The translations under genes were made by a program, and so were the position numbers. Below are positions 277-5,493 of a stretch of DNA of 64,000 bases, piece after piece; within the stretch, counting starts at the first letter, position 1, and each line of letters opens with the position of its first letter. The notes under the pieces are model-generated. The model did no database searches, had not been told where the DNA came from, and saw only the letters and a program-made list of their open reading frames with translations. Origin of the DNA: Guillardia theta CCMP2712 (lineage: Eukaryota; Protista; Cryptophyta); NCBI RefSeq assembly GCF_000315625.1, contig NW_005434658.1, positions 339,139 to 403,138 on the forward strand, read 5' to 3'.

Positions 277-914
277 TGCGCCCCTCCTTTCCCGCCACTA
301 CCCCTACCCCTCTACAACACCATTCACATTCATTTCAAATTTTACCCCCAAATACAGAACATTGTTTTTGAAAATTTCAAAATAAAAGATGAAAAATAAT
401 TGTTACTCCAAATGTTTAGACCTGCTACCCCTGCACCCCCACCTCCTCTGCAACAGAGGTCCAATTCTGGGTCCATGATTAGTTCCCCCGGCTCCCAGCC
501 TGACAACATCCTGCGATGTTTTTCTTCTTCTTTTTTTCTTTTACAGTTTGATCACGACCCCCACAAAAGATTCCAGTAGAGGTGTTACCTGGTTACCCCC
601 GAAAAAAAAATGTTTTTTTACTCCAGTACTAACATGTTACACTTGAGTAATATAAAACTGGGGGGAAGGAGCCGAGGTAGGCAGGTAGGAGGAGGGGAAG
701 CAGGAAAGTAAGGCGAAGTGTGCGGGAGTTCTCATCGAGGAGGATCTGAGCAGTACTTTCATCCCTTATCCTTCCCTGCTCTGTGTTGTTTGCCGCCCTC
801 GCAGTAGGCGGTGAGCTCTAGCTTCTCGAGGGCCTGGGGTATGCCTTGAAGCATCTCAGTTCAGTGCCAACAACTGCCCTGCAGGGTTCTGGTGGAGGAG
901 AGCCTCACATCGCA

Positions 915-1952
915 ATGCACCGTCTCAGAGGAAAGCGCTCAGCGGTCAGGGGAGATGTGGCCATGGCTACTCCGCAAGAACTCTTGACACATGACAGCGA
1001 CAGGCAGAGGTTTCACAATATCCTACATGACCTCAGAAATCCAAGGCTGCGCATACACAACCCCACAACCAAACAGCTGCTCAGAGTCCCTGCCGAGTAC
1101 GTGGTAGACCGGACCATGGGCATGTACTCCAACGTAAACCTCATGGCAGCTCTCATCCTCTCGGGAGTCACCAGTGTCTCGCTGACTCCGGTAGACGTCT
1201 CGAGCATCAGTGCAGACAAGAGGACGCTTGCCAACTGCTTCAACCTGCTGGCCGAGCTGTGCATGACGATCAACGCTCTCAACGTGATGTTCACCACCTA
1301 CATCCTGCTGGCTATCGCTGCGGAGATGCCCTCTACCATCTACACCTTCCTGAGCAAGTCCGAAGGCTTGACCTTCATTTACTTCTTTGCGACGTTCCTC
1401 AGTGGAATTCTGATCTTGGTGCTGGGTGTGCTGGCACAATGGCTGCACGGAGATGCCTGGGCGGCCTGGACGGCAACGATTGCGACGGGAACCATCTTCT
1501 TGACGAGTGCAGTACACTATGGATACTTGATGAGCGTTCTCATGCCGATCCAGTACAGTGGGTGGGGTTTTTTCGCTTCGCTCAACCTCTTCTGGGGGAA
1601 GGAGGCGAAGGCAGAAGCAGCACGACAGGGCAGAATCATCGCGTCCGAGGCCGAGAGCCACCTTCCCCTGGAGAGAGAGTACCGGGAAGGGGTAAGGGAC
1701 GAGAAGCTCGATGAAGTCGTCGCAGATCTCACCAAGCTGCTGCATCGAGCTCTGCCGGAAGCAGCGGAGGAGAGAATCAGCCACATCTCCCAGCAGATGG
1801 CGAACGAGGGGCTGGTAGTTGGGGTGCTTGCGAATGCTGCGCGCAAGGACGCGAAGCTGATCTATCAGGTGCTGGGAGGAGATGACGTGAACTTCGAGCT
1901 GCGGCGCGGGGAGCGGCTGGCAGTGATCAACGAGTTGTTAGAGCACGAGTAA
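915..1952 (+). CDS. Intronless four-TM Orai/PGG-like membrane protein with possible SAM-like C-terminus
   Basis: 368-aa ORF (ATG 915 or 963); four hydrophobic helices; TM2 FNLLAELCMTINALNVMFTTYILLAI and TM4 GTIFLTSAVHY resemble Orai helices. Confidence 0.75.
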   Translation: MHRLRGKRSAVRGDVAMATPQELLTHDSDRQRFHNILHDLRNPRLRIHNPTTKQLLRVPAEYVVDRTMGMYSNVNLMAALILSGVTSVSLTPVDVSSISADKRTLANCFNLLAELCMTINALNVMFTTYILLAIAAEMPSTIYTFLSKSEGLTFIYFFATFLSGILILVLGVLAQWLHGDAWAAWTATIATGTIFLTSAVHYGYLMSVLMPIQYSGWGFFASLNLFWGKEAKAEAARQGRIIASEAESHLPLEREYREGVRDEKLDEVVADLTKLLHRALPEAAEERISHISQQMANEGLVVGVLANAARKDAKLIYQVLGGDDVNFELRRGERLAVINELLEHE

Positions 1953-2600
1953 CGAGGGAAGAGAAGGAGGCTATGGTACAAAAGAGTCGACCAGGTCCCT
2001 CTGAGATGTTTAGCAGATTTTTGGGCACAGTAAGGTGCAGCAGAGAACGTTTTTGTAGAAACACTGATGAAACTATCATCATAATGACACACTTATGAAG
2101 CTATCCATCTTCCAGACTTCTTCCCTCCTCCCCTCCCCGCGTTACAGCGCGTCTCCTCCTTCGCCCAGTTCGCCCGATTGTCGCGTCTCTTTTACGTAAA
2201 GCGTAATCGGAATAATAAGAGGTGGTGGGGGTGGTGAACTGCAGGGTCAGTGTGGGATAACTGATATTGAAAATGTAAGAATATACAGGGTGGGGTAGAA
2301 AAGGAGGGGTATATGCTCCCCGACCATGTTATAGGGAGCTCGTAGTTAGCCATGCGAGGGAGAGCGCTGCTACTGGTCCGCCCTGACAGGCTGGGTGGGA
2401 GGGTGACAGGAAGGATGATGAAGGTGAGAGCGAAGGGGACGCTACCCTTGCCCGCCATGGAGAACACGAGAGCGAGGACGAGGAGTCAGGTACTTGAGCT
2501 GTTTCATCATGAGGGGATATTGCCTGGTGGCACCATCCCACGCACGAGACCCCATGAGGGGCATGCAGCAGCCTGGGTGAAGAGGCCAGCCTCTCCGCAC

Positions 2601-5493
2601 ATGAGCAGCATGACAGCGGGTGTTAGATCATGGCCGCAGGCCCAGAGGGCAGCTCCTTCCTCACGACGAGCAAGCTCCGCTAGGAGGGAGACTGCAGACA
2701 TCGTCATCGTAGGCGCAGGTCCTGTCGGGGTGTATTCGGCGATCCTGCTCTCGAGGTTCGGGCTTCCCTGCGTTGTAGTGGACAAGGGAGATGGCGTGTA
2801 TGACCTGGAGAAGAGCATGGAGATGCACCCGCGCGCTCACGTGCTCAACGTACGGAGCATGGAGCTGTTAGACGAGGTGGGGTTGTACGAGCCCCTGGAG
2901 AAGGAGATGCCGCCGCTGGATCAGTGGAAGTACTTTCGATACACGACCTCCCTGATAGGAACTGAGTTCGGGGTGATCGATCACTGCGACGATGGGGATG
3001 GCGCCTACTCGAACCTCAGGGGCAGCAGCCACGTGTTCGCGTGCCACATTGCTCAGCCGAAGCTCGAGTACCACCTGTGGAAGCTTGCTAGGCAGAGCCA
3101 GGGCATTCGGTTCCTTACACAACACGAGATGACGGACATCGGCAAGGACGGGGACGACCTGGTCGTCAAGCTCTGCCCCCATCCGCCCCCATCTGACGCC
3201 GCAGCAGCAGGGGGGGCGGTGGATATCACCTGCAAGTACTTGATCGCAGCTGATGGCTCGAGAAGCAAAGTGCGGGAGGTCTGCAACATCGGGCTGGAGG
3301 GGAAGCGCGGGATCGAGAGCTTCGTCAGCATCCACTTCAAGTGCCCCGAGCTGGCAGGCAGGCTCCAGGGCAAGTTCGCGATGCTCTACTTCGTGTTCAA
3401 CCCCAAGGCAAGCGAGCGAGGGGCTCGAGGAGGGCGAGGAGGCTGAGTGAGTGCATACAGGTCATAGCGTGCATTGTTGCCCACGATATCAACCAGGGGG
3501 AGTGGGTGGCGCAGGTTTCGGGTGTTGGGACCGTGACCAGTGTATGACGTCTTTGGGTGAAGGTGCCGTACTTCCCCCCAGCGCAGGATGGGATCCTGCG
3601 AGCAGAGGAATGCCATGAGCTGATCGCAGCGATCATCGGCGCACAGCCGACGGGGGATGTCAGGGAAGGTGGGGAGGAGGGTTCCAACGTCTCGAGTGGA
3701 ATCGCCGAGGACGGGCGGCCTATCTCTTGGAAGCTCTGCAGGTTAACTTGAAACCTCCCCAGCTGCCCTCCAGCTGACGTCCAGCAGTTGGAGGCCATGG
3801 TCGATGGATGCCATGATCGCCTCCAAGTACTCCGTGGACGGGAGGATCTTCCTCGTGGGCGATGCTGCGCATCAGTTCCCCCCGTCAGGAGGGTTCGGGC
3901 TCAACTGCGGCCTTCAGGTCCCCAGGCTGCTGCTGCCTCCGAGGCCCGGGGTGACCGTTCGCAGGATGCGCACAACCTTGCCTGGAAGCTAGCAGCCGTC
4001 CTCAGGTGCTCCAAGAGCGCCTCCGTCCTGGATTCGTACCAGGTTGAGAGGAAGCCAGTGGCACGAGACACTGCAGTGAGTGAACTTGCTGCGCTGCTCG
4101 GGCCCTGGTCCTGAGGCTCCTGCCATGCAGATGCTGAGCATCGAGAATCACGCGAGGGGGCTCCTGGTTCCTTCAGCGGTCAAGACGACGATGCTCTCTA
4201 GCTCGAAGCTGGCATGATGGTGTGTTTCAGGTTGGGTTGGACAGGGACATGTTGAGCTCCATGACGCAAGGCTTGCCTGCTAGTCTGCTGCAATCTTTCT
4301 CTACCTCAGCCAAGTCGCTGGTCCGAGAGCCTCTTCCATGCCCAGTCACACCCTGACATGCAGACACAGTCACAAAGCCTCCTACAAGTCGCTCAGAGCC
4401 CGCTGTCGCTCATCCAGTCATTCTCCAAGGTGGCGCATCATTCTGCGGACTTCCTCCTCTATCCTGATCTCGTTGCCGCAGGACCCGACCTCCCCTCCAG
4501 CCTCCTCGCACAACCTTGAGAAGATGTTGAAGATTTTGCTCGGAACCCCCATGGCCAGGGCGATGCAACGAACGGTAACTTCGAGTTGGACGGCGAGCCT
4601 TGAGAGCTCATCTCCCATCCCTTTCTCTGCTCCTCTTCCCGCCAGGTGATCGAGCGGAAATCCATCCCTCTTCTCTTCCCGGAGCACGATCTGGGCGCGA
4701 AGTATCCTCTGAACGAGGTCGTTCGGTGCGGAGCGACGGAGAGCACAGGGACGGGCGACTCCACCTCTCCCTCCTTGGGGCCCATTGGCAAGAGCTCTCT
4801 CCCAGCAGGCACCAGGCTCTACAAGCCTAGCGGGAAGCCCGGTTCCAGGCTGCCGCACAAATTTCTCCGAAGGTATCTGGTACCTCTGCCAGCAAGACGG
4901 TTGATGAGTCTCCGACAGGGTTAAGGACGGGAGGGTCGCCTCGAGCAGCAGCTGGGTGTCGGAGCATGCCGTACGATTGCGACTCTCTCCTCTCCTCGCT
5001 CAGAGGCCGCAGGTGTCTCCGAGTGTCCATGCTCCTCAGTTTGTTCTCTTCCTCGTGGGATCAACCAAGTCGATTCAGTGCTGGGTTGACAGGTGACCTG
5101 CGCCCCTTCTCCCCCACGACTTTGAGTGACTGCTGGACCTGTCAGTCTCGGTGCGTCAGACTTCCTGAGTGTCAACCTGGGGAAGCTGGCCCTGGGGAAG
5201 CGAGCTGCAGTAGCTTCGACGATGGAGGCTTGCATTATTGGGGTGACAGGTGAAGAAAGTCCGTCGGGAATGTGAGCAAAGGGAAGGGAAGGGATGAGTA
5301 TGACACAGTTTGCAGGAGCGCGTGCGAGCTCATGGTCGACGAGTCACGAGGAGAGTTCAGAGAGGTTCTTGGCATGCAGCAAGAGGGAGCCGTGCTCGTA
5401 CGACCCGATGGCTACATTGCGTGGAGATTCGTCGGTTCTGCTCTGGACTTGAAAGAAGCAGAGCTGAGATATCTTGCTTCTGTTCTCACTTGA
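2601..5493 (+). CDS. FAD-dependent aromatic monooxygenase (FAD_binding_3, PheA/TfdB-like), multi-exon; start uncertain
   Basis: Motifs IVIVGAGPVG, HPRAHVLN, AADGSRS, GDAAHQFPPSGGFGLNCGLQ/DAHNLAWKL, YQVERKP and LVRPDGYIAWR spread across short-intron exons. Confidence 0.92.

Follow-up and report, generated by a model that had tools for sequence, protein, structure and literature searches.

Orai proteins are the pore of store-operated calcium entry in animals. They assemble as a hexameric ring in which transmembrane helix 1 (TM1) lines the central pore, with the selectivity glutamate at E106 in the human protein and E178 in the fly protein, and their C-terminal tail is a coiled coil that binds STIM. 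Orai occurs across the eukaryotes and has undergone lineage-specific expansions in haptophytes (PMC7016017). It shares a common origin with Jiraiya, also called TMEM221, which is restricted to animals and is a precedent for an Orai derivative without Glu (PMC7016017). A divergent Orai clade, AlgalOrai, has been described in diatoms, among photosynthetic protists that lack an animal-type STIM (PMC11085791), and Orai-type function in organisms without STIM is a question in algal calcium signalling (PMC11085791, PMC7016017). Here we describe a gene of the cryptophyte Guillardia theta, at positions 915-1952 of a 64,000-nucleotide stretch of its nuclear genome (the window; G000:C16:339139-403138, the assembly having 669 contigs that total 87.1 Mb). 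The original prediction, made by eye from the sequence, had read the product as a divergent Orai-like four-helix channel. On balance, the evidence presented below makes it probable that this protein and its relatives are an Orai-fold family, a remote branch of the Orai superfamily with a ring assembly, TM1 at the centre and a SAM-like tail.

Predicted structure and its comparison with Orai

Four transmembrane helices had been proposed for the protein. A 19-residue Kyte-Doolittle scan revealed four hydrophobic segments and AlphaFold2 predicted four long helices, in agreement with the proposal. The AlphaFold2 models, built with a 46-sequence alignment, had a predicted local distance difference test score (pLDDT) of 90.6 and a predicted template modelling score (pTM) of 0.75 for the whole protein, and scores of 92.1 and 0.84 for a model restricted to the membrane domain (residues 45-262; the TM-only model). 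Helices were predicted at residues 60-90, 100-135, 139-148, 154-178, 181-209, 211-222 and 229-249, followed by a compact five-helix domain at residues 263-345. Lys and Arg clusters lie ahead of TM1, in the TM2-TM3 loop and behind TM4, and because of this placement both termini should be cytosolic, as in Orai. The predicted topology is that of Orai: four transmembrane helices with cytosolic ends, TM1 being long and extended into the cytosol, and TM4 being followed by a further helix. The gene and the parts of its product are as follows.

915-1952, plus strand: intronless coding sequence of 345 amino acids plus stop codon; first ATG at 915, stop codon at 1950-1952, frame open from 846
G000:C16:340053-341087: the same coding sequence in genome coordinates (100% match)
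663-914, plus strand: 5' untranslated leader; two studies have transcript-like contigs, starting at 663 and 680, that continue gap-free into the open reading frame (ORF)
915-1091, plus strand: predicted cytosolic N-terminal region, residues 1-59; residues 1-25 variable and of low confidence, pLDDT 50 for residues 1-20, then above 90
1092-1184, plus strand: TM1 with its cytosolic extension, residues 60-90, the predicted axis-lining helix (AlphaFold2 limits)
1185-1211, plus strand: outer TM1-TM2 loop, residues 91-99, with T91, P92 and D94 in the place of Orai E106 and the outer acidic residues
1212-1319, plus strand: TM2, residues 100-135, with N110 and the motif T127-T128-Y129
1329-1358, plus strand: short helix of the cytosolic TM2-TM3 loop, residues 139-148; Arg occupies position 144 in 75% of the family, but the G. 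theta protein has Thr
1374-1448, plus strand: TM3, residues 154-178, with no conserved acidic residue
1455-1580, plus strand: TM4, residues 181-209, and a short helix, residues 211-222, with P211 (93%) and W217 (75%)
1599-1661, plus strand: predicted cytosolic post-TM4 helix, residues 229-249, which aligns with the Orai TM4 extension; A235, G239 and A246 conserved
1701-1949, plus strand: C-terminal SAM-like five-helix domain, residues 263-345, pLDDT 86-98

To compare the models with solved structures, we used Foldseek and VIA-align. Foldseek returned no significant match for the whole-protein model; the Orai chain 4hkr_B had both the highest probability (0.57) and the highest target template modelling score (TM-score, 0.50) in the list. 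In VIA-align, all seven Foldseek-listed Orai entries occupied ranks 1-7 (Z 8.7-10.0), with the next chain at Z 7.1. These superpositions aligned 122-146 residues of 127-160 at 16-18% identity and extended to model residues 245-262. With the TM-only model, Foldseek placed Orai chains at ranks 1-6 (probability 0.75-0.90, target TM-score 0.49-0.58), while the non-Orai rows had probabilities of at most 0.25. VIA-align placed eight Orai entries in the top nine for this model (Z 8.6-10.3), and the best superposition was on the Orai chain 6bbi_B, covering 135 of 138 residues at 3.0 Å and 16% identity. An exhaustive search of 48,161 representative chains ranked Orai second in both runs (Z 8.4 and 9.2). 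The helical bundles found in that search matched the first three long helices only; Orai alone among the top matches spans all four as well as the post-TM4 helix. In the Foldseek comparison of the TM-only monomer, Orai was top-ranked at non-significant expectation values (E) of 0.38-0.78. Collectively, the structural evidence for Orai appears consistent and coverage-specific and is no proof of homology; that the fold and topology are Orai-like is very likely.

To model an oligomer, four copies of residues 57-222 were used. The interaction prediction score from aligned errors (ipSAE) was 0.81, 0.81 and 0.78, compared to 0.00 for three controls. The runs shared at least 91% of their contacts, and the pLDDT of the partners was at least 75. 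Of 30 proteins solved as pairs, 21 reach the benchmark mark for such predictions, and none of 23 solved as single chains does; this calibration was made on two copies, and eukaryotic proteins that pass it without an older solved relative are rare. Opposite copies were in contact only via TM1 residues 80, 83, 84 and 87. Neighbouring copies packed TM1 against TM1 at the same levels and TM2 against TM3/TM4. From these contacts, the model sets TM1 on the oligomer axis, as in Orai, and along the conserved stripe described below. Packing around the axis of the four-copy model is tight, with Leu, Ser and Gly as the lining residues.

The C-terminal domain (residues 263-345), which the original prediction did not mention, also had matches among solved structures. 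The best match was the LEAFY oligomerisation domain 4ude_B (Z 8.5, 1.7 Å, 68 of 78 residues). Sla1 SHD2 (3idw_A) was matched at Z 7.9 and 2.0 Å over 64 of 66 residues, and the SAM domains of CASKIN2, ASK3, tankyrase and SARM1 at Z 6.6-7.0. By structural superposition, the domain has the five-helix SAM fold, and it resembles SAM domains in superposing on them at 1.7-2.4 Å over 61-68 residues. It differs from them in sequence, with no Pfam SAM family among the matches to the domain alone or among the recurrent matches of 141 family members, and self-association, which is typical of SAM domains, is putative here. A SOAR domain was not found above the Pfam cut-off in a search of the G. theta genome. 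Within the SAM-like domain, window positions 1800-1920 (residues about 296-335) encode a helix-loop-helix of the pattern E-G-L-x-x-x-x-L-x-x-A-A...G...L. The BurrH TALE-like 33-residue repeats were matched at profile positions 301-338 with a summed E of 5e-6, through 15-18 repeats of at most 7 bits each; no structure search supported this match, and the resemblance was judged to be compositional or that of a helix hairpin.

Sequence signal to Orai and the residues of the putative pore

To look for a sequence relationship, 24,736 Pfam models were scanned, the gathering score for Orai-1 (PF07856) being 25 bits. Orai-1 was the Pfam family matched most often among the family members, in 3 of 46 and then in 6 of 141, with a best E of 0.0032. 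The runner-up had three matches at E 0.07 or worse. In two close relatives, the match covers positions 23 to 83/84 of the Orai-1 hidden Markov model (HMM) and falls on query residues 78/79 to 136/137, from TM1 into TM2. The stretches of TM1 and TM2 that had been aligned to Orai by eye lie in the same place, so the two alignments agree with the profile. Orai-1 is also carried by a cluster that neighbours the protein in a language-model search. The family motifs [SA]-A-L-x-L-S-G in TM1 and T-T-Y-x-L in TM2 resemble the Orai strings S-A-L-L-S-G and S-T-C-I-L, consistent with the placement by the Pfam HMM. The sequence signal to Orai-1 is therefore recurrent but sub-threshold.

The other likenesses noted by eye fared less well. 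Every string quoted in the original prediction is present in the ORF at 915-1952 where it had been located (TM1, residues 76-92; TM2, residues 105-136; the TM4 motif, residues 192-202). Although the TM4 motif is present, no position in it reaches 55% in the family, and the Trp at the end of TM3 (position 176) is also below 55%. Since they are unconserved in the family, these two resemblances to Orai carry little weight and are probably due to chance. Direct searches of Pfam and of PDB sequences returned matches that we regard as noise, namely Tautomerase (E 3.6e-4, on the SAM-like part), TetR_C_30, DUF3262 and KCNQ1 (E 0.7).

G. theta has Orai genes of its own that pass the Orai-1 cut-off, at 28.5 and 35 bits. 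The canonical one (G000:C24:540906-544148, minus strand; L001) has at least two exons (ORFs 1321-1746 and 1107-1340). Its first exon matches Orai-1 positions 3-84 at 35 bits, with the selectivity Glu retained in T-S-A-L-I-A-G-F...Y-E, and its second covers positions 115-159. The other (G000:C5:959705-963256, ORF 1417-2160, plus strand; L002) scores 28.5 bits; inspection by eye gives ...Y-V-N-Q-N-P-P as the end of its TM1, and the filter Glu is apparently missing.

The conserved residues of the 915-1952 family were identified from column counts. P50, L55, L56 and P59 precede TM1. Along TM1 runs a conserved stripe of R66 (R/K in 93%), N75, L80 (98%), S83, G84 (small), G/S87, A89 and L90. Position 91 is S/N/T/A in about 65% of the family and D/E in 25%, and is Thr in the G. 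theta protein. P92 is present in 96%, and position 94 is Asp in 58%. N110, at the outer end of TM2, is conserved in 95%, and P211 in 93%. To relate these positions to Orai, we used two registers, given in human Orai1 numbering (E106, L95). The structural alignments start at model residue 58, 61 or 69 against fly residue 145, 148 or 156 (an offset of 87 to fly and 15 to human Orai1), which puts L80 opposite human L95 and T91 opposite E106. A register based on the motif L-S-G-x-A-x-x-A-L, shifted by one residue, is a better motif match and puts P92 opposite E106. The claim that Glu is missing at the E106 position is thus upheld, with Thr91 or Pro92 there depending on the register, and so is the claim that TM3 has no E190 equivalent, as no acidic residue is conserved in TM3. 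The equivalents of R91, K87 and R83 are L76/M77, S72/N73 and M68/G69. R66 is the sole conserved basic residue, and the basic pore ladder of Orai has no counterpart in the 915-1952 protein.

Several results weigh against a relationship to Orai. All six Orai-1 matches are under the 25-bit cut-off, the two with listed scores being at 13.3 and 16.1 bits, and the G. theta protein itself has no match to Orai-1, or to PGG, in Pfam at E ≤ 10. When the family profile was compared with the G. theta Orai proteins, hhalign gave a probability below 1%, and BLASTP against the G. theta Orai proteins was blank too; the two exons of the canonical gene on C24 were compared separately, and a homologue search with the G. 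theta Orai-like ORF found one near-identical protein, so these comparisons were made without a diverse Orai profile. Searched against the 87 Mb genome, the family profile returned only the 915-1952 gene and its paralog, and none of the Orai genes. The reciprocal genome search with PF07856 returned loci on C24, C5 and C3, and not the 915-1952 locus. Among the PDB sequences, Orai was not in the 60 best of the 85-103 matches to the family profile. On the structural side, the Foldseek E-values for Orai with the TM-only model (0.38-0.78) are not significant, and soluble or designed helical bundles reached Z 8-9.6 in the exhaustive search, level with Orai. The alignment tool cautions that a Z below about 13 between helical proteins possibly signifies a common arrangement, and the Z of about 10 may reflect only that. 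The two TM1 registers disagree by one residue, as do two of the Pfam matches. Lastly, the oligomer was modelled with four copies, not six, and may echo memorised Orai structures.

These results bear most directly on the possibility that the protein is a convergent four-helix membrane bundle unrelated to Orai, serving as a SAM-clustered scaffold or adaptor with no pore. Every sequence link to Orai is sub-threshold, the generic helical bundles at Z 8-9.6 come near Orai's 9-10 in the range below about 13 where a common arrangement may suffice, and none of Orai's functional residues is found in the G. theta protein. Convergence nevertheless appears unlikely. It does not readily account for Orai being the sole top match over the four helices and the post-TM4 helix, at up to 98% of the solved chain, or for an identity to Orai of 16-18%, about double the 2-10% of the other rows. 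Nor does it account for Orai-1 being the single recurrent family among the Pfam models, on matching helices, or for an oligomer model centred on TM1. We therefore regard true homology of the family to Orai as reasonably probable.

The original prediction had proposed an Orai/PGG fold. The Orai-like half of this reading is supported by the structure ranks, the recurrent Orai-1 matches and the position of TM1 on the axis, whereas the PGG half is not. PGG is absent from the recurrent Pfam matches of the 141 members, and the outer loop reads T-P-V-D, not P-G-G. A genome search with PF13962 (PGG) was empty, the 915-1952 gene included, and the control genomes gave no match either. All that favours a relative of the plant PGG domain is the TM1 pattern ending in Pro that was put forward in the original prediction. 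No publication linking PGG with Orai, or Orai with Guillardia, was found in the literature searches. We also considered a relative of the transmembrane domain of Cys-loop receptors, since the family profile has weak matches (E 0.003-0.06) to M1-M2 of glycine and GABA-A receptors via its TM3-TM4. No such receptor appeared in any structure search, and the matches cover one helical hairpin in a different topology, suggesting a compositional or hairpin resemblance. A kinship with either group is very improbable.

A further possibility is that the protein derives from Orai and does not conduct, much like Jiraiya/TMEM221 of metazoans, whose proposed action is through association with other components. 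Jiraiya shares its origin with Orai and has lost the Ca2+-binding residues (PMC7016017), and the G. theta protein has no equivalent of Glu106, Glu190 or the basic ladder. The four-copy axis of Leu, Ser and Gly is tightly packed, and the added SAM-like domain suggests protein-protein interaction. However, TM1 carries the most conserved stripe of the membrane domain, in which polar and small residues are included (N75, S83, G84, G/S87, a polar residue at 91, and D94), and N110 of TM2 is near-invariant. Such conservation is more in keeping with a lined conduit than with a pure scaffold, and we rate a non-conducting derivative as less likely still than convergence.

Together, these results suggest how an Orai-fold protein of this kind could be arranged. 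The membrane domain would assemble as a ring with TM1 central, and L80, S83/G84, S87 and T91 would line the axis. Rings of Pro92 and Asp94 would form an outer cap, with N110 nearby. Whether the protein conducts ions is close to evenly balanced, and we lean slightly to the negative. Since it has neither a Glu ring nor the TM3 Glu or basic ladder of Orai, the protein is not expected to be Ca2+-selective. Any conduction would be of a different selectivity, and the protein would not be a STIM-gated calcium release-activated calcium (CRAC) channel. The membrane domain may pass other ions, or it may be non-conducting like Jiraiya/TMEM221. The SAM-like domain could plausibly drive assembly, clustering or regulation in place of coupling to STIM.

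The protein family, the gene and its inverted paralog

To define the family, we searched a library of 1.84 billion representative proteins, clustered at 50% identity, with a profile. This gave 138 clusters at E ≤ 1e-3, 77 at ≤ 1e-10 and 12 at ≤ 1e-30, and in most matches the alignment extends over the membrane and C-terminal parts alike. The named members are from G. theta, Ochromonadaceae sp. CCMP2298 and one MMETSP transcript; the rest are from environmental eukaryotic assemblies. The closest ESM Atlas clusters are labelled Haptophyta, Cercozoa and Chlorophyta. A word-indexed homologue search found 3-4 relatives, without Pfam labels, and using the alignment as query gave no gain. Neither the G. 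theta protein nor any relative among the 141 members scanned reached a Pfam threshold. The 915-1952 protein thus belongs to an unannotated protist/algal family, which, like the inverted paralog described below, the original prediction had not noted.

A shape search of the ESM Atlas with the model returned no Orai-named cluster. Its top match was an unnamed cluster of 201 amino acids that is 69% viral and commonest in Nucleocytoviricota, with a TM-score of 0.69 by its row and a superposition of 177 residues at 3.7 Å. Giant viruses of protists may therefore encode the same membrane fold, judging from this superposition; a BFVD search of viral structures found nothing significant, so that the link to giant viruses was not confirmed.

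Transcript-like contigs from three studies cover positions 663-1481. In an RNA-seq run (2026), 11 reads were found, almost all within 1569-1967. No splice junction across the 915-1952 gene was seen in the transcript-like contigs or the RNA-seq reads. Expression of the gene looks low. Translation could start at M1 or at M17, as residues 1-25 are unconserved and were modelled without confidence. The 138 clusters of relatives, the transcript coverage and an intact second copy under constraint (described below) establish that the ORF at 915-1952 did not arise by chance and is a real, transcribed gene. Immediately upstream of the transcript start, positions 95-580 are of low complexity and would read as poly-Pro on one strand and poly-Arg on the other. 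The neighbouring gene (positions 2352-3446 and 3804-3992, plus strand) is an intron-containing FAD-dependent monooxygenase, with FAD_binding_3 matched at E 7e-30 in the first exon-like ORF and at 1.5e-10 in a later ORF that carries a GDAAH motif.

The second intact copy, GUITHDRAFT_135583 (G000:C16:332075-333019), lies 7 kb upstream on the opposite strand, and its protein is 86% identical. The ratio of non-synonymous to synonymous substitution rates (dN/dS) between the two paralogs is 0.41 overall and 0.31 in the membrane domain, showing that the pair is under purifying selection. The paralogs are mosaic. Nucleotide identity is 99-100% at codons 61-120 and 271-330 and 51-72% at codons 1-60 and 151-180, and dS is 0.03 in the SAM-like part compared to 0.30 in the TM part. 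This uneven identity and dS suggests recent gene conversion between the inverted copies.

Relation to known Orai-type systems

If the Orai kinship holds, the known range of the Orai fold is extended, and the family would allow the parts of the fold that conduction and selectivity require to be told apart in a natural setting. The protein could then be an Orai-fold channel whose selectivity is new and whose control module is self-contained. An unannotated protist family of 138 clusters would also gain a first structural hypothesis. Should the resemblance prove to be convergence alone, what remains is an uncharacterised four-TM and SAM-like family of modest interest. The literature search found no description of a fusion of Orai-like and SAM-like domains, nor of the 915-1952 family. 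A bolder proposal is that the family is a third, hitherto unrecognised branch of the Orai superfamily beside Orai and Jiraiya, widespread among algae and other protists, with TM1-lined pores, an outer ring of Pro and Asp, and its own SAM-like control module instead of STIM. This full picture we consider doubtful, though conceivable.

Compared with Orai itself (PF07856; Drosophila structures 4HKR, 6BBF-6BBI and 7KR5), the G. theta protein is alike in its four TMs, predicted cytosolic termini, long TM1 and TM4-continuing helix, and in a TM1 that is predicted by the four-copy model to be on the oligomer axis. It is unlike Orai in having Thr91/Pro92 for the selectivity Glu, no TM3 Glu, no basic residues at R91/K87/R83 and sub-threshold Pfam scores, and in having a SAM-like domain where Orai has the STIM-binding coiled coil. 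In contrast, the canonical Orai of the same genome keeps the Glu. To our knowledge, no SAM-like domain has been reported in Jiraiya/TMEM221. That protein, which we liken to the G. theta protein by description only, is an Orai-derived four-TM protein that has lost its Ca2+-binding residues (PMC7016017). AlgalOrai has retained the counterpart of the Drosophila E178 Glu and can be recognised as Orai from its sequence (PMC11085791), whereas neither holds for the 915-1952 family.

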